Shown here piece after piece: positions 18 to 50,569 of a stretch of DNA of 64,000 bases. The notes beneath the pieces are model-generated. The model did no database searches and had not been told where the DNA came from. It was given only the letters and a program-made list of their open reading frames with translations. Every line of letters starts with the position of its first letter. The stretch's first letter is position 1. The DNA lies in the IMG/VR virus record IMGVR_UViG_3300021964_009390, positions 62,001 to 126,000 of that record; one strand, written 5' to 3'. Position numbers and translations under genes: made by a program.

Positions 18-1163
18 TTGTTGATAGACGACAATTTCGCGTATGACTCGCAAGGTCAAGGCTTCAACCGCGCTAAAACTGTGGTGGAAATGCTATGCAA
101 AATGTTCCATGTGACTTTCATGCCAACTAACTATCGACCATGTGATCATGATCGAATAGAACATTACCATACGTTGGGTGTGAATGTGGTGCTGGAGCGT
201 CGCGATCATCATGGTATGAAAATATTTGATGTGGTGGGTGAACATATAAAGCAACATGCCGGTGAATACGATGTGATATATTTCAGCCGACCTCACAACT
301 TTGGATATGTGATAGATTACTGCCGCGAGCATTCTCCATCTAGCAAAATAGTGTATGATGCAGAAGCGTTGTTTTACAAGCGTATACAAGCTCAATACAA
401 CACCACCGGGCAGATCAGCATCTGGCCACCATGTGACACACCGTCACAGCAAGTGGTGGATCAAGAGAAGGCAAAAGAATTTGACATGTTGTCCAAAACG
501 GACAATGTTATTGTTGTGTCAGATTCAGAACGTGAAAGTGTGGTCAAAAACGTACCGGCTTTGAAGGGTAAAGTTGCAGTGTATGGACATGCTATACCAC
601 CTCGACCTACCGATAACAACTATCATGAGCGAGCGCACATGCTGTTTGTAGGTTCTTTCGGTAAGGATGACACACCCAATTCTGACGCCATGATACATTT
701 TGTGAACAACATGTTTGACAAGATACATGAACGTACCGGTAGCAAATTGTACATCATAGGTACAAACCCAACCGAGACCATTTTGTCTCTGACCAGTGAC
801 AAGGTGGAGGTTCTAGGTTATGTAGAGGACATAACACCGTACTACAATAATTGTCGATTGTTTGTGGCCCCACATCGCTTCGCCGGAGGTATACCATGGA
901 AAATATCGGAATCCATGTCGAGAGGTTTACCGGTCGTCATCACAAAACTACTGGCCGATCAGTTGGGTATCGGGAGAGAATGTTGCGGTGTGGGTGATAA
1001 CGATACTCAATTCATAAACCAAGCGGTACAAATATACAACTACTCAACCCGGTGGGACAATTGTAGGAACAAAAGCTTACAATACATAAAAAACACACAT
1101 GACCCCATGACACATAGAAAGCAGCTACTAAACAGTATAAACAAGGCATTAAAAACACCATGA
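18..1163 (+). CDS. Glycosyltransferase family 4 (GT-B), probably 5'-partial
   Basis: FVGSF..PNSDA, VEVLGYVEDI, FVAPHRFAGGIPWKISESMSRGLPVV = GT4 C-terminal signature; frame is open back to the window start. Confidence 0.85.
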   Translation: MLIDDNFAYDSQGQGFNRAKTVVEMLCKMFHVTFMPTNYRPCDHDRIEHYHTLGVNVVLERRDHHGMKIFDVVGEHIKQHAGEYDVIYFSRPHNFGYVIDYCREHSPSSKIVYDAEALFYKRIQAQYNTTGQISIWPPCDTPSQQVVDQEKAKEFDMLSKTDNVIVVSDSERESVVKNVPALKGKVAVYGHAIPPRPTDNNYHERAHMLFVGSFGKDDTPNSDAMIHFVNNMFDKIHERTGSKLYIIGTNPTETILSLTSDKVEVLGYVEDITPYYNNCRLFVAPHRFAGGIPWKISESMSRGLPVVITKLLADQLGIGRECCGVGDNDTQFINQAVQIYNYSTRWDNCRNKSLQYIKNTHDPMTHRKQLLNSINKALKTP

Positions 1164-1945
1164 AAAAATATAAAGACAACTTTTTAATTATGTGCGAGTC
1201 ACGGACCGGTAGTACCATGTTGAGTACTGCACTCTGGAACCATCCGCAGGTGTGCATGCATGGAGAGATATTGCAACCTCGGCAGTTCAATAAACAAAAA
1301 CGCGATGACAAATTAGAATTTTTCGGGCTGAGCTACGATACACCAGGAGCTTTGCTCGATCTGTTACGTGATGAGCTGGTGAATGATCCGGTAAAATATA
1401 TAAGCAGGTACGGTTTCTATACCGGTAGATACAAACGTGGAGGTTTCAAATTTAAATATGAAGAGATGTCATGTGGATTGTTTGATCCAGTATTAGAGTT
1501 TATAGTCACACATCCGGAGATCAAAATAATACATTTGACCCGGGACAATCTGTGGCACCGGTATAGATCTTCATATGTAGCCACAAAAATTACAAAACAA
1601 TACAACTCGGTAACAGACACGATATCAATCGATACTGACACTGACAAGGTCAAATTGAATATACAAGATATTGAATCGAGTTTCAAGCGGACAGTTCAAT
1701 GGCAAAGGAAATATAGAAACATGTTCAAACACCATGCGATGTTAAACATAACATACGAATCACTCCTGGCTGACCCGCAAGGAACTTTTGACCAAGTGAC
1801 CGGTTTCTTAAAAATATCCAACCAAAAATGGAAACCATGGACAAAGCAAGTACAACCAGTACAGGACGATGACATAATCCGAAACATGGATAAGATCAGA
1901 GAGCATTTCATTTCCAGTAAATACGGTGTATATTTCGATAAATAA
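1160..1945 (+). CDS. Sulfotransferase (Stf0-like)
   Basis: 5'PSB loop CESRTGSTML, HGEI, IIHLTRDNL..RYRS, ITYESL. Confidence 0.8.
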   Translation: MKKYKDNFLIMCESRTGSTMLSTALWNHPQVCMHGEILQPRQFNKQKRDDKLEFFGLSYDTPGALLDLLRDELVNDPVKYISRYGFYTGRYKRGGFKFKYEEMSCGLFDPVLEFIVTHPEIKIIHLTRDNLWHRYRSSYVATKITKQYNSVTDTISIDTDTDKVKLNIQDIESSFKRTVQWQRKYRNMFKHHAMLNITYESLLADPQGTFDQVTGFLKISNQKWKPWTKQVQPVQDDDIIRNMDKIREHFISSKYGVYFDK

Positions 1946-2020: not shown

Positions 2021-2989
2021 ATGAATGTAGGTTTTTTTACACCTGGATTTAACTACCGCGGTACAGGAGTCGCGATATATGATTATGCAAACTACAATGA
2101 AAGTATCTTAGGTAATCAATCGTATATAATATCTTGCGGCACCGGGGCAAGTAGCGACATCCGTCGTAAGTTTGAGGACCGGTTCGGTGACAGAATGCTA
2201 GGGTGTGGTCATTCTAAATCAAAGCTAGAGTCGCATCTGAACGATCATAACATCACTCATCTATACCGGCTTATCGCAGGAACCAAGTGCGAATTCGAAA
2301 ACCCGGATAACCCTAGGGAGCTGAGTACCATGGTCAAGGAGTGTATACATTGTGTTTTCAACGCTAGCGAACCTCATGGTGATGTCTATGCCGCTATATC
2401 AGATCAAGTCAAAGGATATCATGCATCTGTACCGGTAGTACCTCATATGATATCGTTACCCAACGATACACATAATTTGAGAGCAGAACTAAATATACCT
2501 GATACTGCAACAGTATTTGGTGGTTATGGTGGTAAATGTAAATTTAGTATTCAAGCGGCACGAGATGCTGTTTATCAAGTCGCGAAAGCTCGGACTGATA
2601 TATATTTCCTCTTCGCGAATTTTGATAGATTCTGTGAACATTTACCTAACATTATACATGTACCAACTATATACAATGTAGATGATAAAGTGAGTTTCAT
2701 AAACACATGTGACGCGATGCTGTGGGCCCGTAATGATGGAGAAACGTTTGGTATAGCTATTGGTGAATTTTCCTCAAAAAACAAACCGGTGATTGCAAAA
2801 AAATGCGGTAAGTTAGCCCATGCAAACATTTTAAAGAACAAGGGTATATGGTATGAAGGCAAACAGGATTTAATTGATATATTGCACGCGTTTGATAGGT
2901 GCAAATCTGTAACCGGTGACTGGAATGCATATACTGATTATACACCGGAAAAGGTAATAAATATATTTAACAAAGTATTTTTGAAATGA
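2021..2989 (+). CDS. GT-B glycosyltransferase (large-virus type)
   Basis: RGTGVAIYDYA N-terminus; CDAMLWARNDGETFGIAIGEF GT4-like E-x7-E motif. Confidence 0.75.
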   Translation: MNVGFFTPGFNYRGTGVAIYDYANYNESILGNQSYIISCGTGASSDIRRKFEDRFGDRMLGCGHSKSKLESHLNDHNITHLYRLIAGTKCEFENPDNPRELSTMVKECIHCVFNASEPHGDVYAAISDQVKGYHASVPVVPHMISLPNDTHNLRAELNIPDTATVFGGYGGKCKFSIQAARDAVYQVAKARTDIYFLFANFDRFCEHLPNIIHVPTIYNVDDKVSFINTCDAMLWARNDGETFGIAIGEFSSKNKPVIAKKCGKLAHANILKNKGIWYEGKQDLIDILHAFDRCKSVTGDWNAYTDYTPEKVINIFNKVFLK

Positions 2990-3591
2990 TAAACCATGAG
3001 CACAAATGTATTTTTATACATATACCAAAATGTGGTGGGTCTAGTGTTGAACGACATATAGATAACCGAGACTGGTGGGTACATGCCCCGGCGGAGAAAC
3101 ATTTAACCGCCAATGATGCACGGAACAAATATGCGCAATATTGGGATGATTATTTTAAGTTTTCTATAGTACGTAACCCGTATGATATAGAAGTCTCATG
3201 GTACCATTTCAAAAAACACCCATTTATCCATGGACGGGAGATAGGCTTTTCAGAGTTTATCAAAGACGAGAGTATTAACACAGTAGCGAAAATTAGTCAC
3301 GGTCTTACGGACAAAAGATGGGAGAATATTATACCGAGTGTTACCGACTGCTATGAGTATTTGTCTATTGACGATACTATCGCGATGGATTATATCGGTA
3401 AACTCGAAAATATTCGACAAGACTTCAATACAATCTGTGACAAAATAGGGATACCACGGCAACAACTTCTACATGTAAACAAAACAAACCACAAACACTA
3501 CACTGAATACTATGATGATGAAACAAAGCAAATCGTTGCGGAAAAATACGCAAAAGACATTGAGTATTTTGGTTATGAATTTGGAGAATGA
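2986..3591 (+). CDS. Sulfotransferase family 2
   Basis: FIHIPKCGGSS, FSIVRNPYD..VSWY, YIGKLEN, C-terminal HYTEYYDDET..AKDIEYFGY. Confidence 0.9.
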   Translation: MINHEHKCIFIHIPKCGGSSVERHIDNRDWWVHAPAEKHLTANDARNKYAQYWDDYFKFSIVRNPYDIEVSWYHFKKHPFIHGREIGFSEFIKDESINTVAKISHGLTDKRWENIIPSVTDCYEYLSIDDTIAMDYIGKLENIRQDFNTICDKIGIPRQQLLHVNKTNHKHYTEYYDDETKQIVAEKYAKDIEYFGYEFGE

Positions 3592-3594: not shown

Positions 3595-4209
3595 ATGATA
3601 AGTCATAAACATAAATTTGTATTTATATGCGCCCCTAAAACGGGAAGCACTTCAGTATCAAAAGCATTAGATGAATATTGTATTAAATTTTCACCTCGTA
3701 AAAAGCATTTTACATATTCTGAGTATTTGGATAACAAACGGGTTGGTGAAACGGTTAATAAAGATTATTTTTTCTTTGCATTTGTGAGAAATCCATTTGA
3801 TAGACTTGTGTCACAATTCAAATTTACGGGAAAGAAATGGTGGAAGAAAGCAGGACTTTCGCAATCCTCGTTGTGTTTTGAAAATTATGTTAAGCAAATA
3901 GTTGCCTGCAACTTACCATTTTCTGTTCATCGATACAATTCAAAAATAAAATCAGATCAAACAGATAAAGATTGGTCACAATTGCAGTTTCTAAGTGAAG
4001 ACATAGATTTCATCGGAAGATATGAAAACCTCCAAGAAGACTTTAATATTGTGTGCGACAAAATTGGAATTCCAAAACAACAACTTCCACACAAAAATGC
4101 CACAAAACACAAACACTACACCGAATACTACGATGATGAAACTCGTCAACTTGTTGCGGAAAAGTATGCAAAAGACATTGAGTTGTTCGGATACAAATTT
4201 GGAGAATAA
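3595..4209 (+). CDS. Sulfotransferase family 2
   Basis: FICAPKTGSTS, FVRNPFDRLVS, FIGRYENL, shared C-terminus. Confidence 0.9.
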   Translation: MISHKHKFVFICAPKTGSTSVSKALDEYCIKFSPRKKHFTYSEYLDNKRVGETVNKDYFFFAFVRNPFDRLVSQFKFTGKKWWKKAGLSQSSLCFENYVKQIVACNLPFSVHRYNSKIKSDQTDKDWSQLQFLSEDIDFIGRYENLQEDFNIVCDKIGIPKQQLPHKNATKHKHYTEYYDDETRQLVAEKYAKDIELFGYKFGE

Positions 4210-5675: not shown

Positions 5676-5744
5676 CTTTGATTGCCGGAAGTTATTTTTA
5701 CAATTCACACTTGTTACGAAGACGATACATTGATTCAGATATAA

Positions 5745-6767: not shown

Positions 6768-6774
6768 TCACAAG

Positions 6775-13535: not shown

Positions 13536-13735
13536 GTTTAGATGTACAAGCCAATGCGAAACTACCATTGAGAAGATATCGCCGGATCGATTGGGGCAAA
13601 CCGGCTCCACCGATCCCGGGATGGAACGAGCCACGAGCGATGTTGACGTTATGGGAAGCACAGGAAAAAAATCGAGCGTTCCGGTTCAACAGGGCCACAT
13701 ATCGTTGGATACTAGATGACCCAGATGCTGAGTGA
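13532..13735 (+). CDS. Hypothetical protein
   Basis: ATGA overlap with the upstream stop. Confidence 0.55.
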   Translation: MSLDVQANAKLPLRRYRRIDWGKPAPPIPGWNEPRAMLTLWEAQEKNRAFRFNRATYRWILDDPDAE

Positions 13736-16904: not shown

Positions 16905-16980
<76 letters not shown>

Positions 16981-17855: not shown

Positions 17856-18302
17856 ATGCATAAACAAATTGTAGGCTTCACTGCAGGTAATTTTGACCTG
17901 TTACATCCCGGATATATATACACGTTTGAGGAGGCCAAGCGACATTGTGATCACTTCATGGTGTTTTTGCAACGTGACCCATCTGCCACTCGGTACACCA
18001 AATACAAACCCGTGATTCCGTATTATGAGAGATACAAAGCGTTGATGTCCATAAAGTATGTTGACGAGGTGTACATGTATCAAACCGAAGAGGAACTGGT
18101 TGAATTGATTAAGTTTTGGAAACCAGATGTACGTATACTTGGTGAGGACTATATTGGTAAAAGTTTCACTGGAGACGATCTACCACCTCGAGTGATATAC
18201 ACCACTCGATCTCACGAGTGGAGCACCACTCGATTGAAGGACTTGATAACCAAACAAACAATCAAACAAAACCCTGACATTTTGAATGAACCAGACAAAT
18301 AA
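17856..18302 (+). CDS. Cytidylyltransferase (TagD/HldE-like, HIGH superfamily)
   Basis: GFTAGNFDLLHPG, ER...L..IKYVDEV, LGEDY, RSHEWSTT. Confidence 0.85.
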   Translation: MHKQIVGFTAGNFDLLHPGYIYTFEEAKRHCDHFMVFLQRDPSATRYTKYKPVIPYYERYKALMSIKYVDEVYMYQTEEELVELIKFWKPDVRILGEDYIGKSFTGDDLPPRVIYTTRSHEWSTTRLKDLITKQTIKQNPDILNEPDK

Positions 18303-18306: not shown

Positions 18307-18382
18307 GCCACCTTAGCTCAGCTGGTAGAGCGGCTCACTTGTAATGAGCAGGTCGTCGGTTCGATCCCGACAGGTGGCTCCA
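18307..18382 (+). tRNA. tRNA-Thr(TGT)
   Basis: 76-nt cloverleaf, anticodon loop CTTGTAA, GGTTCGATC T-arm, encoded CCA. Confidence 0.95.
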
Positions 18383-31360: not shown

Positions 31361-31425
31361 CACCTGGTCGGCGGCAGGCTGAAGGTTGCTACGCAACGTT
31401 GCCGATGACGCGCGGGGGTTGACGA

Positions 31426-32016
31426 ATGCTGAGCCATGAACATAAGTATATTTTTCTCCATGTACCCAAGTGCGGAGGTTCTTCTGTAGTTGCAGCACTG
31501 TCGAGACACCCACATAGCAAAAAATTCAAAACTGGGCACCCGGTGCTGGCTAGTTACTTCGATGAGTTCGGTGATAATGTCCGGGATTACTTTATTTTCT
31601 CCATTGTGAGGAATCCGTTCGCAAGAGCGGTCAGTGCGTTCAAGTACCTTCAAAAAGGAGGAAGTAAAAGTTCATCAGACATAAGAGACCGAGATCAATT
31701 TGACATGAAAGGCTTGGATTTTAATAAATTTGTATTGAAATATTTTGACCAAAAAACACCTCTACATTTTCGTTCTCAAGCGGCATTTATAGGTGAATAT
31801 TTTAAACATGTAGACTATATTGGTAAACTCGAAAATATACAGTTGGATTTTGATAATATTTGTGACAAAATTGGAATCTCAAGAAAAAAACTTCCACATG
31901 TGAATAAAACCAATCACTTGCATTACACCGAGTATTATGATGATGAAACTCGTGAACTTGTTACAGAACGATACGCAAGAGATATTGAATTGTTTGGTTA
32001 CGAATTTGGTGAATGA
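31426..32016 (+). CDS. Sulfotransferase family 2
   Basis: FLHVPKCGGSS, VRNPFARAVS, HFRSQ, shared tail. Confidence 0.9.
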   Translation: MLSHEHKYIFLHVPKCGGSSVVAALSRHPHSKKFKTGHPVLASYFDEFGDNVRDYFIFSIVRNPFARAVSAFKYLQKGGSKSSSDIRDRDQFDMKGLDFNKFVLKYFDQKTPLHFRSQAAFIGEYFKHVDYIGKLENIQLDFDNICDKIGISRKKLPHVNKTNHLHYTEYYDDETRELVTERYARDIELFGYEFGE

Positions 32017-32630
32017 TATATGGACCTCGATGTATGAAGAAAACAATTTATATAAGGATGCCAAGATGTGGATCTTTTACAGTGGTCAGTCTTTGTGAAA
32101 AAAATAATATTAAATATTACGGTGGTAGAGATATGGGTTTTTGGAACTATAATACAAACCATACAAAGAATACTTCACCGAAACTGTACAAATGCGTAGA
32201 AAACTATGTAAATGAAAAAGTGTATAATGAAAGTTTCATCTTTACAACTGTAAGGAATCCGTATTCCCGTGCAGTTTCAATGTATAAACACGAATCATGG
32301 GACTCCGCGAGAACTTTCAGCGACTTTTGTAATAAACTTATAAGAGATGAATACCCTTCAAAATTTGCAAAATGGCATAGCTCCACCTTGACAGAGCATA
32401 TTGTCGATAAGGATATTCTCAAAGTTGATTTTGTAGTCAAACTTGAAAATTTTCAACAAGACTTCGATACGGTCTGCGACAAAATAGGGATACCACGTCA
32501 ACAACTTCCACATGAAAACAAATCAAAACACAAACACTACACCGAATACTATGATGAAGAAACAAAACAAATTGTTGCGGAACGATACGCACGTGACATC
32601 GAGTTGTTCGGGTATGAATTTGATAAATAA
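32013..32630 (+). CDS. Sulfotransferase family 2
   Basis: YIRMPRCGS, VRNPYSRAVS, shared tail. Confidence 0.88.
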   Translation: MIYGPRCMKKTIYIRMPRCGSFTVVSLCEKNNIKYYGGRDMGFWNYNTNHTKNTSPKLYKCVENYVNEKVYNESFIFTTVRNPYSRAVSMYKHESWDSARTFSDFCNKLIRDEYPSKFAKWHSSTLTEHIVDKDILKVDFVVKLENFQQDFDTVCDKIGIPRQQLPHENKSKHKHYTEYYDEETKQIVAERYARDIELFGYEFDK

Positions 32631-32635
32631 CTAAC

Positions 32636-33364
32636 ATGAAAGCTATAGTGCAGAGTTGCGACAGATATCACAGTATGGCTCAAAACATGCTGGTTCAATA
32701 CGAAAAATTATGGCCATCTAATCCTTTTACATTCAGGGTCCCATGGAATGAAAAATATCCAGAAGTTATAGAAAATCAATTTGGAAGTAAAATAGAATTA
32801 ATTAACGCTGGAATTAAATTTAAGCAAACATTTCATGCACTAACTAAAGATCTTGATGACAATGACTGGGTTTATTGGTGTATTGATGACAGATACCTAA
32901 TAAGCATTGAAGAAGGGGAAGCTAATCAAGTTCTTAATTTTGTAGAATCAATTAAAAACCCTAACATCATTAATGTGTGCTTTCATTTTGTCAGGTATAT
33001 AAAAGATTCTGCAAATTGTATACAAAGAGAAGGCTCAGGTGTAGAAATTTATTTTGAAAACTTGAGATTTATACAACACAAATCTTTTATCAACAATTGG
33101 TTGCACCAATTTTTTAGAGTTAAAGCGTTAAGAGAGTTCTGGAGGCACATAGAAGAGCCACCTCAATATCAAGCCATACAAATGGATTACAGCACAAAAC
33201 CTTTAAATGGAATTTCTTTAACTTTAGACCATAATATATCCAGGTACGGAGAAAGCACGGAGGGGGGAACGATCACAAAAAATTGTCAAAATAGTTGTAT
33301 TGAAAATAATATATCAATCCCAAAAATTTTTTTATCAAAAAAACAAAAAACAATTATTATTTAA
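32636..33364 (+). CDS. Putative GT-A-like glycosyltransferase
   Basis: VQSCDRY, WP, VYWCIDDRY (DxD-like); AT-rich cargo gene. Confidence 0.5.
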   Translation: MKAIVQSCDRYHSMAQNMLVQYEKLWPSNPFTFRVPWNEKYPEVIENQFGSKIELINAGIKFKQTFHALTKDLDDNDWVYWCIDDRYLISIEEGEANQVLNFVESIKNPNIINVCFHFVRYIKDSANCIQREGSGVEIYFENLRFIQHKSFINNWLHQFFRVKALREFWRHIEEPPQYQAIQMDYSTKPLNGISLTLDHNISRYGESTEGGTITKNCQNSCIENNISIPKIFLSKKQKTIII

Positions 33365-33367
33365 AAT

Positions 33368-33400
33368 CAGGACATTGAGTATTTTGGGTACGAATTCGAA
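33368..33400 (+). repeat. Orphan copy of the sulfotransferase 3' constant sequence
   Basis: 30/33 identical to 34006-34038 (encodes QDIE.FGYEFE) but intergenic. Confidence 0.8.
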
Positions 33401-33462
33401 CAAACGTCCAAAAAAGAATGGTAATACAGTAATGGATCAGGCTAAATAATTATATTATTAAT

Positions 33463-34044
33463 ATGATCAACCACAAACACAAATTTATTTTTATTCACAT
33501 ACCAAGAACTGGTGGGACTAGTATAGAGCAACAGTTTAGTTATAATGGAGATCGTTCTGGAGACGGAAAAAAACATTGGAATCTAGATCAATACAAAGAT
33601 GTATTATCCAACGAACAATTTGATAATTATTTTAAATTCACTTTCATCAGGAACCCCTGGGATATTGTAATTTCTAAATATATGGATAGAGGTTGGTATT
33701 CTAGCCCCATCAAAGGAAGGGGCGGTAAAATTGGATATTATTCCGGGCAAAAGTTAAGTTATTTTTTAAATCATTATCAACCCGCCAGACATGAGTATGG
33801 AGATAGTTTTTTTGATTATTTCAACCCCAAACAAATTGATTTTGTTGGCCGTTTTGAAGATAGAAGGAAAGGTTTAAATTTTATATCAAAAAAAATCGGC
33901 ATTAATCTTAATCCTCAAACTAAATCTAGATCCAATTCTGACAAAAAACACTACACCGAATACTACGATGATGAGACAAGACAAATGGTTGCGGAAAGAT
34001 ATGCACAGGACATTGAGTTGTTCGGGTACGAATTCGAATCGTGA
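33463..34044 (+). CDS. Sulfotransferase family 2
   Basis: FIHIPRTGGTS, IRNPWD..IS, VGRFE, shared tail. Confidence 0.9.
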   Translation: MINHKHKFIFIHIPRTGGTSIEQQFSYNGDRSGDGKKHWNLDQYKDVLSNEQFDNYFKFTFIRNPWDIVISKYMDRGWYSSPIKGRGGKIGYYSGQKLSYFLNHYQPARHEYGDSFFDYFNPKQIDFVGRFEDRRKGLNFISKKIGINLNPQTKSRSNSDKKHYTEYYDDETRQMVAERYAQDIELFGYEFES

Positions 34045-34856
34045 ATATAAAAAATATTAATACAATTAAGTTATTTTCTGATCCACTGTTCGATGCGCAT
34101 TTTTCTGTCGATCCTGGTTCTAAATTTTTAATATTTAAATCAATAGATTTTAAAACGGTAAGTGCTACATTAAAAGTAGATCCGGTGAGTCTGGTTAAAT
34201 TTTTAAACGATATATGTATGGAGATGTATAGAAATGGTAAAACTAATGGTATACCTCGAGATGTGTCGATAAATTTACATGATCATTATTTTTGTGCGGA
34301 AACTATAAGAGATATATATTCAGGTATTATTTCTGACCTGCTAGCGGACAATAGTGAATGGAGTACAAACGAAATTGTTTCATTTGGGTTTTTATGCGGT
34401 AACACTAAACCTCAAAGATTGAAATACATTGAAATGGGTAAAAGTTTTTCTCAACTAAACTACATATCGACAAAAAAATACAATAGGTACTCCAAAGATA
34501 CAGACGGCTTCACAAGCGTGATAAAATTAAAAAAAGATTATAAGTATTTTATCGATTTAACCGGTCATAGCTACAGTACTAAAACATATCAATTTCTAGC
34601 ATCCAAACGCGTATACTTCACTTCTAAACATAATGAGATTTTAGACTGGGAAGCAAATCACTTAAAACCCTGGGAAAATTACATCCCGGTTGAAGATGAT
34701 CTTTCAGATCTTATAAGTAAATATCAAACAATAGAATCAAACCCGGTATTATATAAAAAAATTATTAAAAATAATACCAATTTGATAGCAAATCAACTCT
34801 CTCATAAATTAATGTTACAGCATTTAATAAAGACTATTTCAGCGTACATTATATAA
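34041..34856 (+). CDS. Glycosyltransferase family 90 (CAP10-like)
   Basis: YKYFIDLTGHSYS....L, LKPWENYIPV..DLSDL. Confidence 0.75.
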   Translation: MNIKNINTIKLFSDPLFDAHFSVDPGSKFLIFKSIDFKTVSATLKVDPVSLVKFLNDICMEMYRNGKTNGIPRDVSINLHDHYFCAETIRDIYSGIISDLLADNSEWSTNEIVSFGFLCGNTKPQRLKYIEMGKSFSQLNYISTKKYNRYSKDTDGFTSVIKLKKDYKYFIDLTGHSYSTKTYQFLASKRVYFTSKHNEILDWEANHLKPWENYIPVEDDLSDLISKYQTIESNPVLYKKIIKNNTNLIANQLSHKLMLQHLIKTISAYII

Positions 34857-34903
34857 ATATAAGGAAGTTGAAAAATAATCAATTGTAGTTAATTATATAT
34901 ATT

Positions 34904-34975
34904 ATGAGAGTAGCTGTAACTGGAACTGCGTGTGTAGGTAAAAGCACATTTGTGAATGATTTTTTAAAAAATTGA
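34904..34975 (+). pseudogene. Truncated P-loop kinase/ATPase N-terminus
   Basis: MRVAVTGTACVGKSTFVNDFLKN*: intact Walker A then stop. Confidence 0.65.
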
Positions 34976-34976
34976 T

Positions 34977-35612
34977 ATGAACATCAATTTATATGTGTCA
35001 TACTATAAGGATAAAATAAACGAGAGGAATCTGGAGCTAGAGCAGTGCCTGCTCGGTAATCTAACCAATGCCGCGGTAGACAACGTATATCTGCTAGCTG
35101 AAAACACCCCACCAAAACGGTTTCGGACTAACAGTAAAGTCACTGTCATACCACATAAACGACCCACGTTCACCAATTTTTTCAACATTGTGAACGACAC
35201 AACAGGTGCAAAGGATCTGAACATAGTCGTGAACAGTGACATCTACCTACCGGACAACATCGCGGACATACACCCTCATGTGAGTATGGACACAGTAGCA
35301 TGCATGTCCCGGTGGGAGTTACAATCTGATGGTTCGCTTGTACAGGCACGCGGACCACGTGGTGACAGCCAGGACGCGTGGATGTGGAGAGGCAAGATTC
35401 GCGAGGTGGATTACAGTGACTTCAACCTGGGTGTACTGGGTTGTGACAATCGAATAGCCTGGGAGTTCATGAACGTGGGTTATCGATTGATAAATCCATG
35501 CGAGACATTCAAAATAGCCCATGTACACAACTCCAAAGTCAGAAATTACAGATACAATGATCTGAATGACAAAGTGTCTGGACCATACCAGTTTGTGTCA
35601 CATAGCGCATGA
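34977..35612 (+). CDS. Putative glycosyltransferase-like protein
   Basis: VVNSDIY, SRWE, DSQDAW, LG..GCDNRI, HVH. Confidence 0.6.
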   Translation: MNINLYVSYYKDKINERNLELEQCLLGNLTNAAVDNVYLLAENTPPKRFRTNSKVTVIPHKRPTFTNFFNIVNDTTGAKDLNIVVNSDIYLPDNIADIHPHVSMDTVACMSRWELQSDGSLVQARGPRGDSQDAWMWRGKIREVDYSDFNLGVLGCDNRIAWEFMNVGYRLINPCETFKIAHVHNSKVRNYRYNDLNDKVSGPYQFVSHSA

Positions 35613-36199
35613 TAAGTCACGAGCATAAATTTCTTTTCATTCATGTGCCACGGACAAGTGGTAGCAGCATCGAGATACAGTTTAAATACAACGATGCAGG
35701 TATGTGGATGGTAAACTATGATGGTCGTAAGCATTGGACATTGAACCAATGGAAAGAACATTTAGAACCGGAAGTATTTGAAACATATTTCAAATTCACA
35801 ATTGTCCGGAATCCTTGGGACCGGGTAATCAGCAAATATTGTACACGTAATGAGTTTGGACCGATCGGACAACCGGCCGGAAAATCACTGAAATATTTTC
35901 TAGACAATTACAAAACTCCCGGGAACGAACATGGAGAGACCTTGATTGATTATTTCGATCCGGAGCAGATGGATTACATCGGTAGATTTGAATCTAGAGA
36001 GGACACATTAACATATGTGTCACAGAAAATTGGTGTAGAAATAGACAATAGCTACAAGCTTAGACCAGTACAAGCCACGATCAAGCAACAAAACGATAAC
36101 CATCATTACACCGAATACTATGATGAAGAAACAAAACAAATTGTTGCGGAACGATACGCACGTGACATCGAGTTGTTCGGGTATGAATTTGGTGACTAA
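35609..36199 (+). CDS. Sulfotransferase family 2
   Basis: FIHVPRTSGSS, VRNPWDRVIS, IGRFE, shared tail. Confidence 0.9.
   Translation: MISHEHKFLFIHVPRTSGSSIEIQFKYNDAGMWMVNYDGRKHWTLNQWKEHLEPEVFETYFKFTIVRNPWDRVISKYCTRNEFGPIGQPAGKSLKYFLDNYKTPGNEHGETLIDYFDPEQMDYIGRFESREDTLTYVSQKIGVEIDNSYKLRPVQATIKQQNDNHHYTEYYDEETKQIVAERYARDIELFGYEFGD
36107..36191 (+). repeat. 85-nt perfect direct repeat of 32538-32622
   Basis: TACACCGAATACTATGATGAAG...GGGTATGAATTTG identical in both copies. Confidence 0.9.
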
Positions 36200-36246
36200 T
36201 TATATCTGACTCGGTTCAAAAGTAACAGTTTAGAATAAATATATAT

Positions 36247-37837: not shown

Positions 37838-37859
37838 GCTCAGGTATAAATAACTATTT

Positions 37860-38732
37860 ATGAAACTCAAGAGAAAAATTTTGATAATGGGGCTCCCGGG
37901 TGCAGGTAAAACTACACTGGCGGAATTGTTGGTACAAAAGCTATGCGCAGTGTGGTTCAATGCGGACGCTGTTCGTCAAGAGATCAGCAAAGATCTTGGT
38001 TTCACAGCAAATGATAGACTAGAGCATTCACGACGCATGGGTAAAATGTGTGAATTCGCTAGTAAATTCGGAACCTGGGCCATAGCCGATTTTGTATGTC
38101 CCACCAATAAAGCTAGAGAGCTGTTCGATGCAGACTACATAATCTGGGTGGATCGAATCAAGGAAGGTAGATTTGAAGATACAAACAAGATGTTCGAACC
38201 ACCAGCGAATGCAGATCTTGTGTTGAGAGACGGTACACCACAAGAGTGGTTGGAACAGTCCATGGATCTTTTGAAACCGGAGCTATGGGACAATCAAGCT
38301 CCAACCGCGTTGTTGATTGGCCGTTATCAACCATTCCATAAAGGACATAAAACACTAGTGGCCGAAGCCATCAAACGTACCGGGCAATGCTGCATAGCTC
38401 TTAGAGACGTGGGGGGAAAGGATGATAGTAATCCATATGACTTTCAGCAAGTGAAACGTGAGATACACGCGGCATGTCCGGAGTTTGGTGACAAAATAAA
38501 AGTTGTCGAGCTCCCCAACATCACCGATGTATTTTACGGTAGAGGTGTGGGTTACAACATAGAACAACTGGAACTAGACAAGAGCATCCAGGAAATATCG
38601 GCCACCAAGATTCGCAAAGGTGAGATAGACCAACAAGGTAACAAATTGAACAAAAACACAGGTGGTCACAATCCGTTCACTGGAGAAGGTCTCCAAGTTG
38701 ACACACAAAACACAGACCGACGTTACGAGTGA
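37860..38732 (+). CDS. cysC: Adenylyl-sulfate kinase (CysC-like) fused to HIGH nucleotidyltransferase
   Basis: MGLPGAGKTT, NADAVR...DLGFT..DR, FVCP, FEPP; second domain IGRYQPFHKGH ... ISATKIR. Confidence 0.8.
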   Translation: MKLKRKILIMGLPGAGKTTLAELLVQKLCAVWFNADAVRQEISKDLGFTANDRLEHSRRMGKMCEFASKFGTWAIADFVCPTNKARELFDADYIIWVDRIKEGRFEDTNKMFEPPANADLVLRDGTPQEWLEQSMDLLKPELWDNQAPTALLIGRYQPFHKGHKTLVAEAIKRTGQCCIALRDVGGKDDSNPYDFQQVKREIHAACPEFGDKIKVVELPNITDVFYGRGVGYNIEQLELDKSIQEISATKIRKGEIDQQGNKLNKNTGGHNPFTGEGLQVDTQNTDRRYE

Positions 38733-38733: not shown

Positions 38734-38988
38734 TCAGTTATCCTCCCACTGACTGGTACGATACTTGGCTAGCTCCTCCGGTTCTGGCAACAGCGTGGAA
38801 TGTATAATCTCGCGTTCTTGTAGGTACTGACTTCGATTGAATGCAAACCGGTAATATGCTCTGTACATTTTACATATTGTCATCCATACATACAGCACGA
38901 TCAACGTTGCACCTTCATACAACACTTCCACAATCCACAACAAAACAACAAACGGCAACACGAACAACAACCATATTATGAAATTCAT
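38734..38988 (-). CDS. Small membrane protein
   Basis: Hydrophobic N-terminal half; ATG 6 nt after TATAAT. Confidence 0.55.
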   Translation of the reverse strand: MNFIIWLLFVLPFVVLLWIVEVLYEGATLIVLYVWMTICKMYRAYYRFAFNRSQYLQEREIIHSTLLPEPEELAKYRTSQWEDN

Positions 38989-39045
38989 AACATTATTATA
39001 CAATATCTAGTAGAGTTTGCAACAACAAGTATATATAATATATAG

Positions 39046-41621: not shown

Positions 41622-44069
41622 ATGAACGTTACTAAAAGAAACGGTAAGAAAGAAAATTTTAATGAGGACAAAATACTAGCCTGTGTACGGAGAGCTTGTG
41701 ACGGTGATGAAGAACTTGTACAAAAAGTATATTGGAACACCAAACTAAATTTATATGATGGTGTCAAAACCAAAGAAATAGATGAATCTGTGATCAAATC
41801 TGCTCGGTCGTTGATAGAGAAAGACCCTAGATGTAAATACGTTGCTGCAAAGCTGTTGCTAGCTACAATATACAAAGAGGTGTTTGGTGAAGGTGCAGAT
41901 AGTGATGCTTTTGTGTTACAGTACAAAAAAACGTTCATTGTCAATCTGAAAAAACTTATCAAAGAGAAGATTGTTAACAAAGAGTTGGCTAAGTTTGATT
42001 TACAAAAACTGTCAGATGCGTTGGAAATTGATAGAGATTACAGGTTTGAATATCTAGGTTTGCAGACAGTATACGATAGATATCTTATGCATATCAATGA
42101 TGTGAGGATGGAGACTCCTCAAGCATTTTGGATGAGAGTTGCTATGGGGCTCGCGTTGAAGGAGGACCCGAATACTCGCGAAGAATGGGCCATAAAATTT
42201 TACAAGCAGATAAGCAGTTTCGATTTCATGTGCAGTACACCCACATTGTTCAACAGTGGTGGTACATTCAATCAATTGAGTAGTTGTTTTTTAAACACGT
42301 TCGAAGACAGTATCAACGGAATATTTGATGGTTTACATCAAGAAGCTTTGAAGAACAAATACGCTGGTGGTTTGGGTATGGATTTGACAAATTTCCGGGC
42401 ATGTAACAGTTACATTCGAGGGACTAATGGTTACACACAGGGTGCTGTGTATTTCTGGAAACTGTACGGTGACATGCTCACCGCGGTGAATCAAGGTGGT
42501 AAACGACGAGGCGCTGGATGCGCTTATTTAGAGACCTGGCATGCCGACATCGAGGATTTTATACAGCTCAGAAAAAACACTGGAGATGATCGCAAACGCA
42601 CACATGACATGAACACAGCCAACTGGATACCAGACTTGTTCATGAAATGTGTACAAAACGATGAACCATGGTATCTATTCAGTCCTAATGAAGTACCAGA
42701 GTTACATGAATTACATGGTCGTGAGTTTGAAAAAAAATATAAAGAGTATGTCAAGCGCGGAAAGAGGGGTGAGCTTAGAATATTCCGGGAAATTAATGCA
42801 AAAGATTTGTGGAAAAAAATGCTGAGAAGTTTATTCGAGACCGGGCACCCATGGATTACTTTCAAAGACCCTAGCAACACTAGATATAGTAATCAGCATG
42901 CCGGTGTAGTGCATAGCAGCAATTTATGTACCGAGATTTTATTACACACCAAAGCTACTCAATATCATGAAAACAGTCGGAAGGTGAAGTCTCACGGTGA
43001 AACGGCAGTGTGTAATCTGGGTAGTGTGAATCTGAAAAACCACGTAAAAACTGATGCAAACGGTAACGTTAGTATTGATTATAACAAATTGAAAAACACT
43101 GTCTCGTTAGGTTTACGTATGTTAGACAACGTGATAGATATCAATTTCTACCCGACAGAAGAGACTAAAAAAAGTAACATGACTCACCGGCCGGTTGGAA
43201 TGGGTAGCATGGGGTGGCATGACATGTACTATGCTCTAGGTATTGAATTTGATAGTGATGAAGCTGTGAAAATGAGCAGCGATTTGTATGAGTTCATATC
43301 ACATGCTTCGATTGAAGCAAGTTGTGGCCTGGCTAAAGAGCGTGGTAAATATCAGAGTTACGATGGTTCGTTGTGGAGTAAAAATGTTTTCCCTATGGAT
43401 ACATATAAAGATGTGATGAAGTTACGTGAGCATCGTGCCATGAGTCGTTCACGTGGTGATCTCGATTGGACCAAGTTGCGTGACAAAGTTAGTAAACATG
43501 GCATGAGAAACAGCAACACCATGGCGATCGCACCAACCGCTACTATATCTTCAATAACCGGATGTAGTCCGAGCATCGAACCGTATTTCTCTGTATTGTA
43601 TGTGTATAGTACACTAAGTGGTGAGTTCACAATGATTAACGAACATTTTGTAACAGACATGAAAAAATTAGGTAAGTGGGATGAATCATTGGTTGACGAC
43701 CTCAAGAGGACCGATGGAGATGTTTCTCAAATACCTACCGTACCTGAAGAGATAAGAAGGAAATATAAAACGGCATTCCAACAAGACCAAATGAAAATGA
43801 TCGAACAAGCCGGTGCCCGGCAGCGTTGGATAGATCAGGGGCAAAGTTTAAATTTATACAACAACGAGACCAGTCTGAAATACTTGAACGATTTGTACTT
43901 CCATGCGTGGAATCAAGGTCTCAAAACAACATATTACCTGAGGAATCAGAGCGCTAGCAAAATTGAGAAGAGTACAGTTTCTAAAGTGAGTGATCCAGCC
44001 ACTCCGGAGATTGAAAATATATCGGCATGTAGTCTCAATAATCCGGGGGAATGTGAGAGTTGTCAATAG
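41622..44069 (+). CDS. nrdA: Ribonucleotide reductase class Ia alpha subunit with ATP cone
   Basis: VTKRNG ATP cone, STPTLFN, QLSSC, SNLCTEI, AIAPTATIS, KTTYY, C-terminal C..CESCQ. Confidence 0.97.
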   Translation: MNVTKRNGKKENFNEDKILACVRRACDGDEELVQKVYWNTKLNLYDGVKTKEIDESVIKSARSLIEKDPRCKYVAAKLLLATIYKEVFGEGADSDAFVLQYKKTFIVNLKKLIKEKIVNKELAKFDLQKLSDALEIDRDYRFEYLGLQTVYDRYLMHINDVRMETPQAFWMRVAMGLALKEDPNTREEWAIKFYKQISSFDFMCSTPTLFNSGGTFNQLSSCFLNTFEDSINGIFDGLHQEALKNKYAGGLGMDLTNFRACNSYIRGTNGYTQGAVYFWKLYGDMLTAVNQGGKRRGAGCAYLETWHADIEDFIQLRKNTGDDRKRTHDMNTANWIPDLFMKCVQNDEPWYLFSPNEVPELHELHGREFEKKYKEYVKRGKRGELRIFREINAKDLWKKMLRSLFETGHPWITFKDPSNTRYSNQHAGVVHSSNLCTEILLHTKATQYHENSRKVKSHGETAVCNLGSVNLKNHVKTDANGNVSIDYNKLKNTVSLGLRMLDNVIDINFYPTEETKKSNMTHRPVGMGSMGWHDMYYALGIEFDSDEAVKMSSDLYEFISHASIEASCGLAKERGKYQSYDGSLWSKNVFPMDTYKDVMKLREHRAMSRSRGDLDWTKLRDKVSKHGMRNSNTMAIAPTATISSITGCSPSIEPYFSVLYVYSTLSGEFTMINEHFVTDMKKLGKWDESLVDDLKRTDGDVSQIPTVPEEIRRKYKTAFQQDQMKMIEQAGARQRWIDQGQSLNLYNNETSLKYLNDLYFHAWNQGLKTTYYLRNQSASKIEKSTVSKVSDPATPEIENISACSLNNPGECESCQ

Positions 44070-44717
44070 ATGAGACCCCAAGTGTTAATTGTAGGTTGGG
44101 GAGGAGCTGGTCAAACATATCTACTGGAACAATTTAACAAACATGGAGTCCGGACGAATCATTGGAATGATGAAGACAAAGTAAAACATTGTACGTATAA
44201 CTACTTTATAAACCATAACATATACAATATCACCAGAGAACATTTGAATACAATTCCAATTATATACATGTATTGTGATCCGGTAGTTGCTATCAACAGT
44301 TATTATCGTAGAAACTTCGCTAATGCACAACATTACAAAATGAACAGAGATCATGATATATCTAGTATGGAAGCCGAGCAGAATGGGTTGTATACTGCTA
44401 TACCCAATGATAGAACCAAATACATACACCGGGTCATGACAGCCAAGCGAGACTTGTTCAATTATATAAATCACGCTAGAGGGTGGATGAACGCGCCTAG
44501 AATATTTCCAATGTCATTGGAGGACATCATCAAATACAAATCACAATTGTCAGACAAGTTACGTGTACCGTTGAACGTGTTCAACGGTCTGGAAATAAAG
44601 CCTAGAAGTTCTAAAAACCAGGCCCCACAAGCATTCCGCGACGTGTATCTTAAGGTGTATAATGATGTTAGAATTTTGTGCCGGAAATACTTGAATAACA
44701 GTCTCAAAAAAATTTAA
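44070..44717 (+). CDS. Sulfotransferase-fold-like protein between nrdA and nrdB
   Basis: IVGWGGAGQT loop, K(V)KH, YMYCDP..AINSYYRR. Confidence 0.5.
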   Translation: MRPQVLIVGWGGAGQTYLLEQFNKHGVRTNHWNDEDKVKHCTYNYFINHNIYNITREHLNTIPIIYMYCDPVVAINSYYRRNFANAQHYKMNRDHDISSMEAEQNGLYTAIPNDRTKYIHRVMTAKRDLFNYINHARGWMNAPRIFPMSLEDIIKYKSQLSDKLRVPLNVFNGLEIKPRSSKNQAPQAFRDVYLKVYNDVRILCRKYLNNSLKKI

Positions 44718-44734
44718 TCTCAATAAATAAACAT

Positions 44735-45739
44735 ATGTCTACTAAATCAGGAAAAGTACTGGATGGAGATTCAGCCGGAGTCAATCAAATATTACCACAT
44801 GTCAACAAATGGGCATGGGACTTGTACAAGCAAGGTAAAAACAACAATTGGACTCCGGAGGAGGTGCCAATGACTAAAGACATACAAAACTGGAAACAAG
44901 ACGGTGTAATTAGTGATGATGAGCGTTTACTTATCAAAAGATGTTTGGGTTTTTTCGCTGGAAGTGAAAGTCTTGTAGGTAACAACTTGTTCACACTGTT
45001 CAAGTATGTAACTGATCCAGAGTGTCGCCAGTATATGGCTAGACAAATGTATGAAGAGTGTTTACATAATGATACAATAGTGTATATATGTGACAGTTTA
45101 GATCTAGATATAGACGAGGTATACGAGGCATACAACACGATCCCTAGTATTAAAGCTAAGGATGATTTTCTAATGAATGTGACCAAGGGTCTCGGTAAAC
45201 AGATTGACACATCAACAACTGAGGGTCAACGTGAATTGATCAAAGGAGCATTCATATATTGGATTGTATGTGAAGGTACATTCTTCTTCAGCGGTTTTGC
45301 TATGTTGTTAGCGTTATCTAGAAAAATCCCGGGTGTTTGTGAACAGATACAATATACATTGAGAGACGAGAGTATTCATATCAAATTCGGTACTACATTG
45401 TTGAACAAAATCAAAGAACAATACCCAGATGCATGGGATGACACCTTAGAGAATGAACTAGTAGAGAATCTAAAATCTGCTGTTGAGCTAGAGATACAGT
45501 ATGCTAAAGATGTATTGCCTCGAGGTATACTAGGGTTAAATGCTGATATGTTTGTCGATTACATGCAACATATTGCTAACCGTCGGTTGTCTGGGTTGGG
45601 TATGAAGTTCCGATACGACAAAGACACAAATCCGTTTCCTTGGTTGAGTGAAACAATCGATTTACAAAAGCAAAAGAACTTTTTTGAAACCAAAGTTACT
45701 GATTACCAAAATTCAGGGGCTTTGGATGACGATTTTTAA
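44735..45739 (+). CDS. nrdB: Ribonucleotide reductase class Ia beta subunit
   Basis: WTPEE, EECLH, EGTFFFSGF, RDESIH, NFFETKV..Y. Confidence 0.97.
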   Translation: MSTKSGKVLDGDSAGVNQILPHVNKWAWDLYKQGKNNNWTPEEVPMTKDIQNWKQDGVISDDERLLIKRCLGFFAGSESLVGNNLFTLFKYVTDPECRQYMARQMYEECLHNDTIVYICDSLDLDIDEVYEAYNTIPSIKAKDDFLMNVTKGLGKQIDTSTTEGQRELIKGAFIYWIVCEGTFFFSGFAMLLALSRKIPGVCEQIQYTLRDESIHIKFGTTLLNKIKEQYPDAWDDTLENELVENLKSAVELEIQYAKDVLPRGILGLNADMFVDYMQHIANRRLSGLGMKFRYDKDTNPFPWLSETIDLQKQKNFFETKVTDYQNSGALDDDF

Positions 45740-49867: not shown

Positions 49868-50569
49868 TTATATAGTCGTTACGGCATGTTGATACAGCTT
49901 CATATCTAATGAATTGTGCATCATCTCACTAACTATCTGTCGCTCAAATGGTGTAGTGTTATTATTTTTTTGCCGGTTGAGTATTTCTAGCTTGCATGTT
50001 TGTTTATTTTCAATTTTAAAATCAGTGCATATATTTTTAATTACTTCTGTAAGTTGATCGTTTATTTTTTCTAGAATTAACGTGTATGTTATATTGTCAT
50101 AATCTTTACATATTGTATCTATATCATTGGATTGACTTACATACTCACACATCAAACTGGAGTAAGATAAACAGTATTTTTTGAGTGTTTCAGCCGGTAA
50201 CCTTCTCATAGGTTTATTGTCGAATTTAACTTTGTCAAAATAGTAATAATGACTTATCAAACGATCGACCGGATGTCTCAACACACATAATGATTTGCAG
50301 CTGTCAGATCTAGTGACTACATCATTGTTTTTTGTGTGACATAACACTATTTTTATCTGTTCTAAATGTTCATTCAACACCCCCATTGCAGCTACGTAAT
50401 CATCATTTGTGGTTAAATTTATACCCTTGTAATCGCAGTCACCAAACAGTGTTTGCGGAAAGTATATCTGTTGATGGGTGTATTTTGTAATAAATGCTTT
50501 GTATAGTAGTGAACGTACGCTAGTACCACCGCATTTTGGTATATGATAAAATATAAATTCCGGATTCAC
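49868..50569 (-). CDS. Sulfotransferase family 2
   Basis: FYHIPKCGGTS, LRHPVDRLISHYYY; lacks the shared 3' tail. Confidence 0.85.
   Translation of the reverse strand: MNPEFIFYHIPKCGGTSVRSLLYKAFITKYTHQQIYFPQTLFGDCDYKGINLTTNDDYVAAMGVLNEHLEQIKIVLCHTKNNDVVTRSDSCKSLCVLRHPVDRLISHYYYFDKVKFDNKPMRRLPAETLKKYCLSYSSLMCEYVSQSNDIDTICKDYDNITYTLILEKINDQLTEVIKNICTDFKIENKQTCKLEILNRQKNNNTTPFERQIVSEMMHNSLDMKLYQHAVTTI

Follow-up and report, generated by a model that had tools for sequence, protein, structure and literature searches.

A predicted compact PAPS synthase in a sulfotransferase-rich marine phage, with a candidate ATP sulfurylase domain of a previously unrecognised kind

A T4-like marine phage rich in sulfotransferase genes encodes a two-domain protein that, as judged from comparative evidence alone and in the absence of biochemical evidence of any kind, probably makes the sulfate donor PAPS from ATP and sulfate (we put the probability of this reading at about 0.7). 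The small second domain of this protein looks like a previously unrecognised, third type of ATP sulfurylase, which also appears to fill the missing first step of sulfate assimilation in some marine bacteria. The gene lies in a stretch of 64,000 nucleotides (hereafter, the window) that covers positions 62,001 to 126,000 of the IMG/VR record IMGVR_UViG_3300021964_009390, and consists of the following parts:

37845..37852 (+), TATAAATA, a T4-type late-promoter-like octamer 8 nt before the ATG
37860..38732 (+), the whole ORF, 290 aa, a predicted bifunctional PAPS synthase (APS-kinase domain plus NMNAT-derived nucleotidyltransferase domain)
37860..38285 (+), the N-terminal domain (residues 1-142), a trimmed APS kinase with the P-loop GLPGAGKT at nt 37890-37913, NADAVR at 37959-37976, FTANDR at 38001-38018 and FEDTNKMFEPP at 38172-38204, and with a shortened lid segment
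38286..38633 (+), the C-terminal domain (residues 143-258), a minimal HIGH nucleotidyltransferase and candidate ATP sulfurylase, with GRYQPFHKGH (residues 154-163) at nt 38319-38348, SNPY at 38427-38438, YGRGVGY at 38535-38555 and ISATKIR (residues 246-252) at 38595-38615
38634..38732 (+), a low-confidence C-terminal tail (residues 259-290; pLDDT 56-75), poorly conserved and not aligned in homologs

The N-terminal domain is APS-kinase-like by both sequence and fold. The Pfam APS_kinase profile (PF01583) matches it with an E-value of 8.9e-14 and 52.2 bits against a cut-off of 21.1, although only profile positions 5-90 of 152 are covered; APS kinases in the PDB match at E 4e-8; and a Foldseek search gives APS kinases at E 9e-10, with TM by target of 0.59-0.81. 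The AF2 model of the whole protein has a pLDDT of 91.9. The Walker A lysine, K17, is invariant in 54 homologs. D36, R39, F48 and R53 align with the DGDxxR...F...DR residues of 3uie and 2yvu, which probably contact APS, the first Asp of DGD being replaced by Asn34; all four are at least 90% conserved, and R39 is invariant. The pairing of F105 with the second phenylalanine is by eye only, and this residue is below 90% conserved. The domain does not, however, reach the NCBIfam apsK cut-off (49.4 against 138.7 bits) and lacks the mobile lid, of which, by our reading of the aligned sequences, about 24 residues are replaced by DRIKEGR.

The C-terminal domain, of about 115 residues, retains every catalytic motif of the HIGH transferases across 58 homologs, with G154, Q157, H160, H163, G227, R228, G231 and R252 invariant (numbering of the window protein). 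Pfam CTP_transf_like scores 23.4 bits against a cut-off of 21, a family profile hits archaeal NMNAT at 4e-13, and the model of the domain has a pLDDT of 93.6. By sequence and fold, the nearest relatives are NMN adenylyltransferases of the archaeal/NadM type, with an almost identical GRFQPFHxGH motif, the NP loop and ISxTxIR, along with PPAT; the domain thus derives from archaeal/NadM-type NMNAT and is not a shrunken Sat. Relative to the archaeal NMNAT, about 28 residues that follow strand 3 are missing and are replaced by YGR(D/G)VGY: the alignment to 1f9a stops at PNI and resumes at GY, the profile matches NMNAT only over the first 75 or so residues, and Foldseek aligns about 78 residues at an rmsd of about 2 Å. 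The missing segment is likely to be the one that forms the nicotinamide-nucleotide site.

The relation to Sat-type ATP sulfurylase (PF01747) is more distant. No PF01747 match was found in the phage genome, and no Sat appears among PDB sequence hits at E up to 10. In fold searches, the ATP sulfurylase of T. thermophilus (1v47) superposes over 113 of 116 residues at Z 9.2, as compared to Z 11 for NMNAT/NadM and Z 10.9 for PPAT structures. A forced profile alignment to 17 Sat domains places HxGH on HxxH, YGRD on VGRDHAG and ISATxIR on ISGTxxR; however, the hhalign match is weak (probability 20%, E 1e-3), so that the GRD correspondence is of low confidence. The QxRN sulfate-binding residues of Sat are absent, and no PUA-like domain is present, as nothing lies between the kinase domain and the transferase core. 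The domain branches with NMNATs rather than with Sat.

Given this ancestry, two alternative activities had to be considered. The protein could be a reversed NadR-like NAD salvage enzyme, a nicotinamide riboside kinase joined to an NMN adenylyltransferase, which would restore NAD+, for example, against NAD-depleting defences; besides the NadM and archaeal NMNAT matches, this reading draws on a weak hit of Pfam AAA_28 to the N-domain and on the position of the gene next to a COG3236-annotated gene in Salvovirus phages. It appears unlikely, since the N-domain matches APS kinase far better than AAA_28 (8.9e-14 against 9.2e-5), about 28 residues of NMNAT are deleted, the NMNAT family cut-offs are missed by a wide margin (TIGR01527 and NF003786; 21.0 against 181.2 bits and 30.3 against 397 bits), no NAD genes were seen nearby, and all conserved context is sulfur-related (see below). 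Alternatively, the protein could be a CoA-synthase-like enzyme, with a phosphopantetheine adenylyltransferase as the C-domain and an N-domain that phosphorylates the 3'-OH of dephospho-CoA. The PPAT structural matches and weak hits to archaeal PPAT models are compatible with this view, as is the adenosine 3'-OH that APS kinase and dephospho-CoA kinase both appear to phosphorylate, but no CoA-pathway context was found anywhere, the PPAT family cut-offs are not reached (28 against 104 bits), and the possibility seems remote.

The genomic context, in contrast, points to sulfate activation. Three architectures link the transferase to APS kinases, namely, the fusion, found in 81 loci; adjacent split genes in viral and bacterial genomes; and the transferase fused upstream of a canonical full-length APS kinase, a protein seen on 4 contigs, with a 46% identical C-domain and a kinase that matches human PAPSS1 at E 1e-55. 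Furthermore, the small membrane protein DUF2061 is encoded directly beside the gene in 38 of 81 viral loci, and in 80 bacterial DUF2061 loci the neighbours are APS kinase (55), CysQ-like phosphatase (52), CysD-like (49) and CysN-like (36) genes. The transferase occupies the same slot, next to DUF2061 and APS kinase, as the bacterial CysDN ATP sulfurylase with CysC, although the folds are unrelated (PP-loop ATPase plus GTPase in CysDN) and there is no GTPase here to drive the reaction. The genome of the phage under study has no DUF2061, and the small membrane ORF just downstream of the gene (38734-39003, minus strand) is not DUF2061-like.

In an order of 11 small marine alphaproteobacterial genomes, 10 carry the transferase next to the kinase gene. 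In the nine loci that are not cut by a contig end, the order is CysH-DUF2061-kinase-transferase, whereas the tenth ends inside the kinase. Sulfite reductase is present in all 11 genomes and lies on the CysH contig just upstream, but none has a CysD-type hit and only one has Sat, with the reservation that these genomes are incomplete MAGs. The CysH found there has the CC...GCxxC pattern of Fe-S APS reductases, so the cluster needs an APS source. An independent second bacterial lineage for this missing-gene argument was not obtained: surveys of 301 genomes of the order of a gammaproteobacterial MAG that carries the transferase, and of a 401-genome sample of the phylum, found the transferase only in the seed genomes.

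These data also bear on another explanation, in which only the N-domain is catalytic, as an APS kinase that uses APS made by the CysDN or Sat of the host, whereas the C-domain is a nucleotide-binding regulatory or scaffolding module without sulfurylase activity. Phage cysC is a recognised auxiliary gene (PMC10914622), the C-domain lacks the QxRN residues of Sat, and degenerate partner domains in sulfate activation seem to have a precedent in the APS-kinase-like allosteric domain of fungal ATP sulfurylase. Nevertheless, we consider this explanation doubtful, given the invariance of the catalytic HIGH motifs across the 58 homologs, the lack of detectable CysD in the 11 genomes with CysH and sulfite reductase, of which only one has Sat, and the finding that, in the alphaproteobacterial gene cluster, the transferase is the most conserved of the four compared genes, at 82-96% identity. 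It is also conceivable, albeit improbable, that the C-domain adenylylates another small anion or sulfur compound (selenate, sulfite, thiosulfate, phosphate), or works in reverse on APS: the acceptor pocket is predicted to be small, and the context fixes the pathway rather than the exact acceptor. However, the position beside an APS-type CysH, downstream of sulfite reductase, together with the fusion to APS kinases, fits sulfate most simply.

The presumed consumers of PAPS are abundant in this phage. Seven sulfotransferase ORFs in the window score above the Pfam cut-offs, and one more is borderline, compared to about 10 in a sequence-only reading of the window:

1160..1945 (+), sulfotransferase (Sulfotransfer_3/1)
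2986..3591 (+), sulfotransferase (Sulfotransfer_2)
3595..4197 (+), sulfotransferase (Sulfotransfer_2), the stretch as scanned, exact ORF ends not set
31429..32004 (+), sulfotransferase (Sulfotransfer_2), the stretch as scanned
32013..32630 (+), sulfotransferase (Sulfotransfer_2)
33463..34044 (+), sulfotransferase (Sulfotransfer_2)
35609..36199 (+), sulfotransferase (Sulfotransfer_2)
49868..50386 (-), borderline sulfotransferase-like ORF (21.9 bits against a cut-off of 22)

The 222-kb genome holds 10 Sulfotransfer_2 places and 1 Sulfotransfer_3 place, but no Sat and no CysD/CysH. The sulfotransferases lie among glycosyltransferase genes, which were confirmed at 90-1163 (GT1), 5184-5675 (GT61) and 34218-34856 (GT90), with a weak one at 2021-2989, that is, fewer than the about 7 counted in the sequence-only reading. 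A cytidylyltransferase was confirmed at 17856-18302, whereas two methyltransferase-like genes that had been reported in the same reading were not found among the ORFs scanned.

The association with sulfotransferases extends to other viruses, if not uniformly. Of 20 viral records chosen for a Sulfotransfer_2 gene, 11 carry the kinase (6 fused to the transferase, 4 with the transferase as the adjacent gene, and 1 with the kinase alone), including 4 of the 5 records that are at least 90% complete. Conversely, only 7 of 20 records with the fusion have a sulfotransferase above the cut-off, and the complete phage Bacata has none. No phage CysH occurs in the 20 records with the fusion, so PAPS reduction by a phage enzyme is not the purpose there.

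Taken together, the fused, split and reverse-order architectures, the link to DUF2061, the alphaproteobacterial gene cluster and the co-occurrence with sulfotransferases support the central inference of the sequence-only reading, namely, that the C-terminal HIGH domain is an unrecognised compact ATP sulfurylase which, with the APS-kinase domain, forms a PAPS synthase feeding the phage sulfotransferases. The suggestion that the system is self-sufficient holds only in part, since the genome has no CysQ-like PAP phosphatase (PF00459) or DUF2061. In the scheme we propose, the C-domain would bind ATP through GRYQPFHKGH and ISATKIR and transfer AMP to sulfate, held by the invariant Arg228 of the YGR(D/G)VGY loop, giving APS and PPi; the lid-less APS kinase would then phosphorylate the 3'-OH of APS to yield PAPS, which would pull the unfavourable first step forward. 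The chemistry, the role of Arg228, the coupling between the two domains and the acceptor of the sulfotransferases are all inferred.

The metazoan bifunctional PAPS synthases (PAPSS1/2) have the same domain order, with the APS kinase at the N-terminus and an adenylyltransferase of the HIGH superfamily at the C-terminus, a homologous kinase domain and the same predicted two-step chemistry, but the C-domain of the phage protein is not a Sat-type sulfurylase and has about 115 aa instead of about 390, the kinase lacks the lid, and the whole protein has 290 aa against about 620. The gene family as such is already known from metagenomic surveys as phage cysC (the source annotation is "adenylylsulfate kinase"; PMC10914622), but, in what we read, these reports treat it as an APS kinase alone and do not discuss the fused transferase domain, its link to DUF2061 or a possible sulfurylase role. 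Our literature searches found no description of this domain as a sulfurylase, which in itself is not proof of novelty.

Only two kinds of ATP sulfurylase are known, Sat and CysDN. It appears more likely than not that the NMNAT-derived domain founds a third family, which would be widespread in phages, fused to or next to a lid-less APS kinase and often with DUF2061, and would be the main or only sulfate-activating enzyme in an order of streamlined marine Alphaproteobacteria. If so, this would be the smallest sulfate-activating enzyme known, phage cysC genes would be complete PAPS synthases rather than enzymes of a single step, and sulfate assimilation would have been under-called in some bacterioplankton, which bears on the long-standing question of which bacterioplankton can use sulfate. 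It would also explain how a sulfotransferase-rich phage obtains PAPS regardless of the sulfur metabolism of the host, suggest a link between DUF2061 and sulfate activation or uptake, and offer a minimal PAPS synthase for enzymatic sulfation in biotechnology.

A nucleotide search of cultured phages and a protein search with the baseplate protein found nothing, an RNR search gave only matches below 60% identity (best 47.8%), and the host stays unknown; the genome has no psbA. One further protein, in which the transferase is joined to a chorismate synthase fragment, was considered uninformative and possibly a miscalled gene. The TAAATA upstream of the phage gene, taken in the sequence-only reading as a promoter suggestive of late expression, is part of the full octamer TATAAATA, the promoter function of which is inferred; T4 gp15-like and baseplate genes are in the window, which contains 10 copies of the octamer against 3.45 expected, with 10 reached in 0 of 100 shuffles.

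The ORF at window 37860-38732 (+) encodes a protein of 290 amino acids, in which the following parts can be distinguished:

Residues 7-87: match to Pfam APS_kinase, with the P-loop GLPGAGKT
Residues 143-258: small HIGH nucleotidyltransferase domain
Residues 154-163: GRYQPFHKGH
Residues 191-192: NP loop
Residues 226-232: YGRGVGY
Residues 246-252: ISATKIR
Last 32 residues: poorly conserved tail of low model confidence

The N-terminal part matches APS_kinase (E 8.9e-14, 52.2 bits against a cut-off of 21.1), but only the first 90 of the 152 profile positions are covered. Solved APS kinases match at E 4e-8, and an AlphaFold model built on 54 homologs (pLDDT 91.9) retrieves APS-kinase structures at a Foldseek E of 9e-10, with TM by target of 0.59-0.81. 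The P-loop and residues D36, R39, F48 and R53 align with the DGDxxR...F...DR positions of plant and archaeal APS kinases and are conserved family-wide, whereas F105, which we pair by eye with the second Phe, is less conserved. By our reading of the aligned sequences, the lid segment is cut down to DRIKEGR.

The genomic context proposed in the sequence-only reading, namely about 10 sulfotransferase-fold genes, about 7 GT-like genes, two methyltransferase-like genes and a cytidylyltransferase, proved to be largely right. Seven sulfotransferase ORFs in the window pass the Pfam cut-offs and one is borderline; the entire viral record (222,461 bp, of which the window is bases 62001-126000), rated 100% complete, has 10 Sulfotransfer_2 places and 1 Sulfotransfer_3 place. 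Three clear GT-like genes and one weak one, as well as a separate cytidylyltransferase, were confirmed, but the methyltransferases were not, among the ORFs scanned. A perfect TATAAATA lies 8 nt before the ATG, and this octamer occurs 10 times in the window against 3.45 expected; since the window also has T4 gp15-like and baseplate genes, a T4-type late promoter is plausible. Other features of the window are:

90-6767 and 31429-36199: two islands of sulfotransferase and glycosyltransferase genes (GT1, GT61, GT90, a DUF1796 papain-like protein)
5745-6767, 32636-33364 and 34977-35612: ORFs of these islands with no Pfam match, which may be further diverged members
38734-39003 (-): small hydrophobic, probably membrane protein (89 aa), encoded convergently, 2 nt after the stop of the predicted synthase gene, and not related to DUF2061
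50566-52389 (-): 607-aa protein with a DUF5672 domain, next to the borderline sulfotransferase-like ORF at 49868-50386, possibly of the same glycan pathway

When considering the origin of the C-terminal domain, it is important to ask whether it could be a reduced Sat. A profile of 58 C-domains hits archaeal NMNAT (1f9a, 4e-13) and NadM (2qjt, 1e-11), whereas no Sat sequence appears even at E 10. The match covers only the first 75 or so residues: after the PNI strand, about 28 residues of NMNAT are absent, and the alignment resumes at GY...ISxTxIR. A model of the domain alone (pLDDT 93.6) gives the same picture with Foldseek, which returns NMNAT, NadM and PPAT with about 78 residues aligned at about 2 Å. 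A structural aligner independent of Foldseek ranks NadM (Z 11.2), NMNAT (11.0) and PPAT (10.9) first and, at rank 6, T. thermophilus ATP sulfurylase with bound APS (Z 9.2, 113 of 116 residues aligned). An hhalign comparison with 17 Sat catalytic domains taken from alphaproteobacterial genomes is weak (probability 20%, E 1e-3); when extended, it lays HxGH on HxxH, YGRD on VGRDHAG and ISATxIR on ISGTxxR. Hence, the domain is an NMNAT derivative, not a Sat, in which the segment that follows strand 3 in NMNAT has been replaced by a short loop with an invariant Gly-Arg-x-x-Gly. Inasmuch as the lost segment appears to contribute the nicotinamide-nucleotide site of NMNAT, this replacement is what one would expect if the acceptor had become a small anion.

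The fusion of the two domains is very common in aquatic metagenomes: more than 100 clusters at 68-95% identity were found, on contigs up to 208 kb, 137 representatives scored below 1e-30, and at least 596 places were found in IMG/VR. It also occurs in cultured phages at 35-41% identity, namely, Salvovirus-like siphoviruses of Xylella, Xanthomonas and Stenotrophomonas, and Stenotrophomonas DLP6. The sources name the fusion 'adenylylsulfate kinase', 'hypothetical' or 'phosphopantetheine adenylyltransferase', whereas the stand-alone transferase is auto-named 'cytidyltransferase'. In addition to the fusion, the two domains are found as adjacent separate genes in viral records and in two bacterial MAGs and, independently, the transferase occurs fused in the opposite order to a canonical full-length APS kinase. 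The latter protein (P0255) was seen on four contigs from different samples; its transferase part is 46% identical to ours with all motifs, and its kinase part matches human PAPSS1 at E 1e-55. Recurrent fusion to two different APS-kinase lineages ties the transferase to the APS/PAPS pathway. The transferase match in the 216,422-bp IMG/VR record G160 (195126-195497) is interrupted by 3 in-frame TAG codons, and G160 may be a phage that reads TAG as a residue; two further records, G164 and G165, show one TAG and one TAA at the domain junction.

In 38 of 81 viral loci, a 67-aa membrane protein of family DUF2061 lies immediately beside the gene, sometimes in two copies (L014:1086-1310 and 37 other IMG/VR loci). 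In 80 bacterial loci fetched by DUF2061 (L083-L162), mostly from Flavobacteriales, the commonest neighbours of this protein are a full-length APS kinase (55 loci), a CysQ-like phosphatase (52), a CysD-like protein (49) and a CysN-like GTPase (36), next to sugar-nucleotide genes. DUF2061 is thus a marker of sulfate-activation clusters, and in the phage loci the kinase-transferase gene stands where cysC and cysDN stand in bacteria. DUF2061 is a 67-aa membrane protein in phages and a two-repeat protein of about 140 aa in bacteria, with an invariant YYxHERxW motif, and is tightly linked to sulfate-activation genes (cysC, cysQ, cysD, cysN, sulfite reductase); a role in sulfate uptake or as a membrane anchor for the activating enzymes might be considered. 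The alternatives in which the protein functions in NAD salvage or in CoA synthesis fit the fold but none of the context, and both appear unlikely, the latter somewhat more so. A more ordinary candidate for any NAD or CoA role in this phage is a third HIGH nucleotidyltransferase of its genome, a 193-aa protein with weak PPAT and NMNAT matches that is encoded outside the window (G000:C1:153059-153640 (-) in coordinates of the phage genome; locus L225:260-841).

Two of the 80 bacterial loci contain the transferase. In a gammaproteobacterial MAG, the order is kinase, DUF2061, transferase, followed by a convergent TPR-sulfotransferase gene, and that genome shows no Sat and no PAPS_reduct-family gene. 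In an alphaproteobacterial MAG from station ALOHA, the order is CbiX, a siroheme methylase, sulfite reductase, CysH, DUF2061, kinase, transferase, all on one strand. All 11 genomes examined for the taxonomic order of the latter MAG (0.6-1.2 Mb) have sulfite reductase and exactly one strong PAPS_reduct hit, the CysH on the same contig just downstream of sulfite reductase, so that no CysD was found; ten have the transferase, and only one has Sat. These are incomplete MAGs, however, and the transferase was found in no other of 300 sampled genomes of the order of the gammaproteobacterial MAG, nor of 400 sampled genomes of the phylum, so that only one lineage supports this argument. In nine of the ten genomes the order CysH-DUF2061-kinase-transferase is kept, whereas the tenth locus ends inside the kinase gene, and the transferase is the best conserved of the four genes, at 82-96% identity. 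The CysH carries the CC...GCLPC...ECGIH pattern that appears to be typical of Fe-S assimilatory APS reductases, so the cluster needs an APS-forming enzyme; the simplest reading is that the transferase is that enzyme. A purely regulatory C-domain, while perhaps the strongest of the rival possibilities, is improbable, being hard to square with the invariant catalytic motifs and with this pattern of missing genes.

The co-occurrence with sulfotransferases was assessed in both directions. Of 20 longer records with the fusion, 7 have a sulfotransferase above cut-off and about 5 more have weak hits; the close relatives of our gene have 3-5 each, whereas the complete phage Bacata and one 93%-complete record have none. 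None of these records has a PAPS reductase. In Salvovirus phages, which have no recognisable sulfotransferase and where a use for PAPS is unexplained, the fusion gene sits next to genes annotated COG3236/GTP cyclohydrolase II, MazG-like pyrophosphatase and 'cysteine dioxygenase' (Xylella phage Bacata, NC_052973.1, 29138-33759, locus L001). Conversely, of 20 viral records chosen only for a Sulfotransfer_2 homolog, 11 carry the kinase (6 fused to the transferase, 4 with the transferase as the adjacent gene, 1 kinase only), including 4 of the 5 that are at least 90% complete. This is far above what a gene found at roughly 600 places in 2.9 million contigs would give by chance. The genome of the phage itself has no Sat, CysD/CysH, CysQ or DUF2061.

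These architectures and contexts suggest a mechanism in which, however, every chemical step is inferred. The C-domain would bind MgATP by the HxGH and ISxTxxR motifs, and sulfate, held by Arg228 and the YGRxVGY loop, would attack the alpha-phosphate to give APS and PPi, although another small acceptor, while unlikely, cannot be excluded. The fused kinase domain would then phosphorylate the 3'-OH of APS to give PAPS, thus pulling a reaction whose equilibrium lies far toward ATP, and the PAPS would feed the phage sulfotransferases, which lie in two islands with glycosyltransferase genes (about 90-6800 and 31400-36200).

By its predicted function, this protein is a PAPS synthase with the domain order of the animal enzyme, but, by descent, its second domain belongs with NMNATs. 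This domain cannot be assigned to Sat, as it has no profile match, no QxRN and no PUA domain, nor to NMNAT, given the deleted segment, the scores far below the cut-offs and the absence of NAD context. Phage 'cysC' is a known auxiliary gene (PMC10914622); in the literature that we could search, the fused transferase, its DUF2061 partner and a sulfurylase role are not described. The second domain possibly represents a new enzyme family for a known reaction.

Elsewhere in the window, the following genes were noted:

8839-9768: KaiC/RecA-like ATPase
11968-12420 (-): HSP20 small heat-shock protein, shared with 20 related viral loci
12561-13535: DUF932 protein
13716-14258: purine (xanthine/hypoxanthine-guanine type) phosphoribosyltransferase
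16905-16980: tRNA-Met (CAT), about 0.9 kb upstream of the cytidylyltransferase gene
17856-18302: RfaE-II/TagD-like cytidylyltransferase
18307-18382: tRNA-Thr (TGT), immediately downstream of the cytidylyltransferase gene
41622-45739: class I ribonucleotide reductase large (815 aa, with ATP-cone) and small subunits, separated by a 215-aa ORF with no family match (44070-44717)
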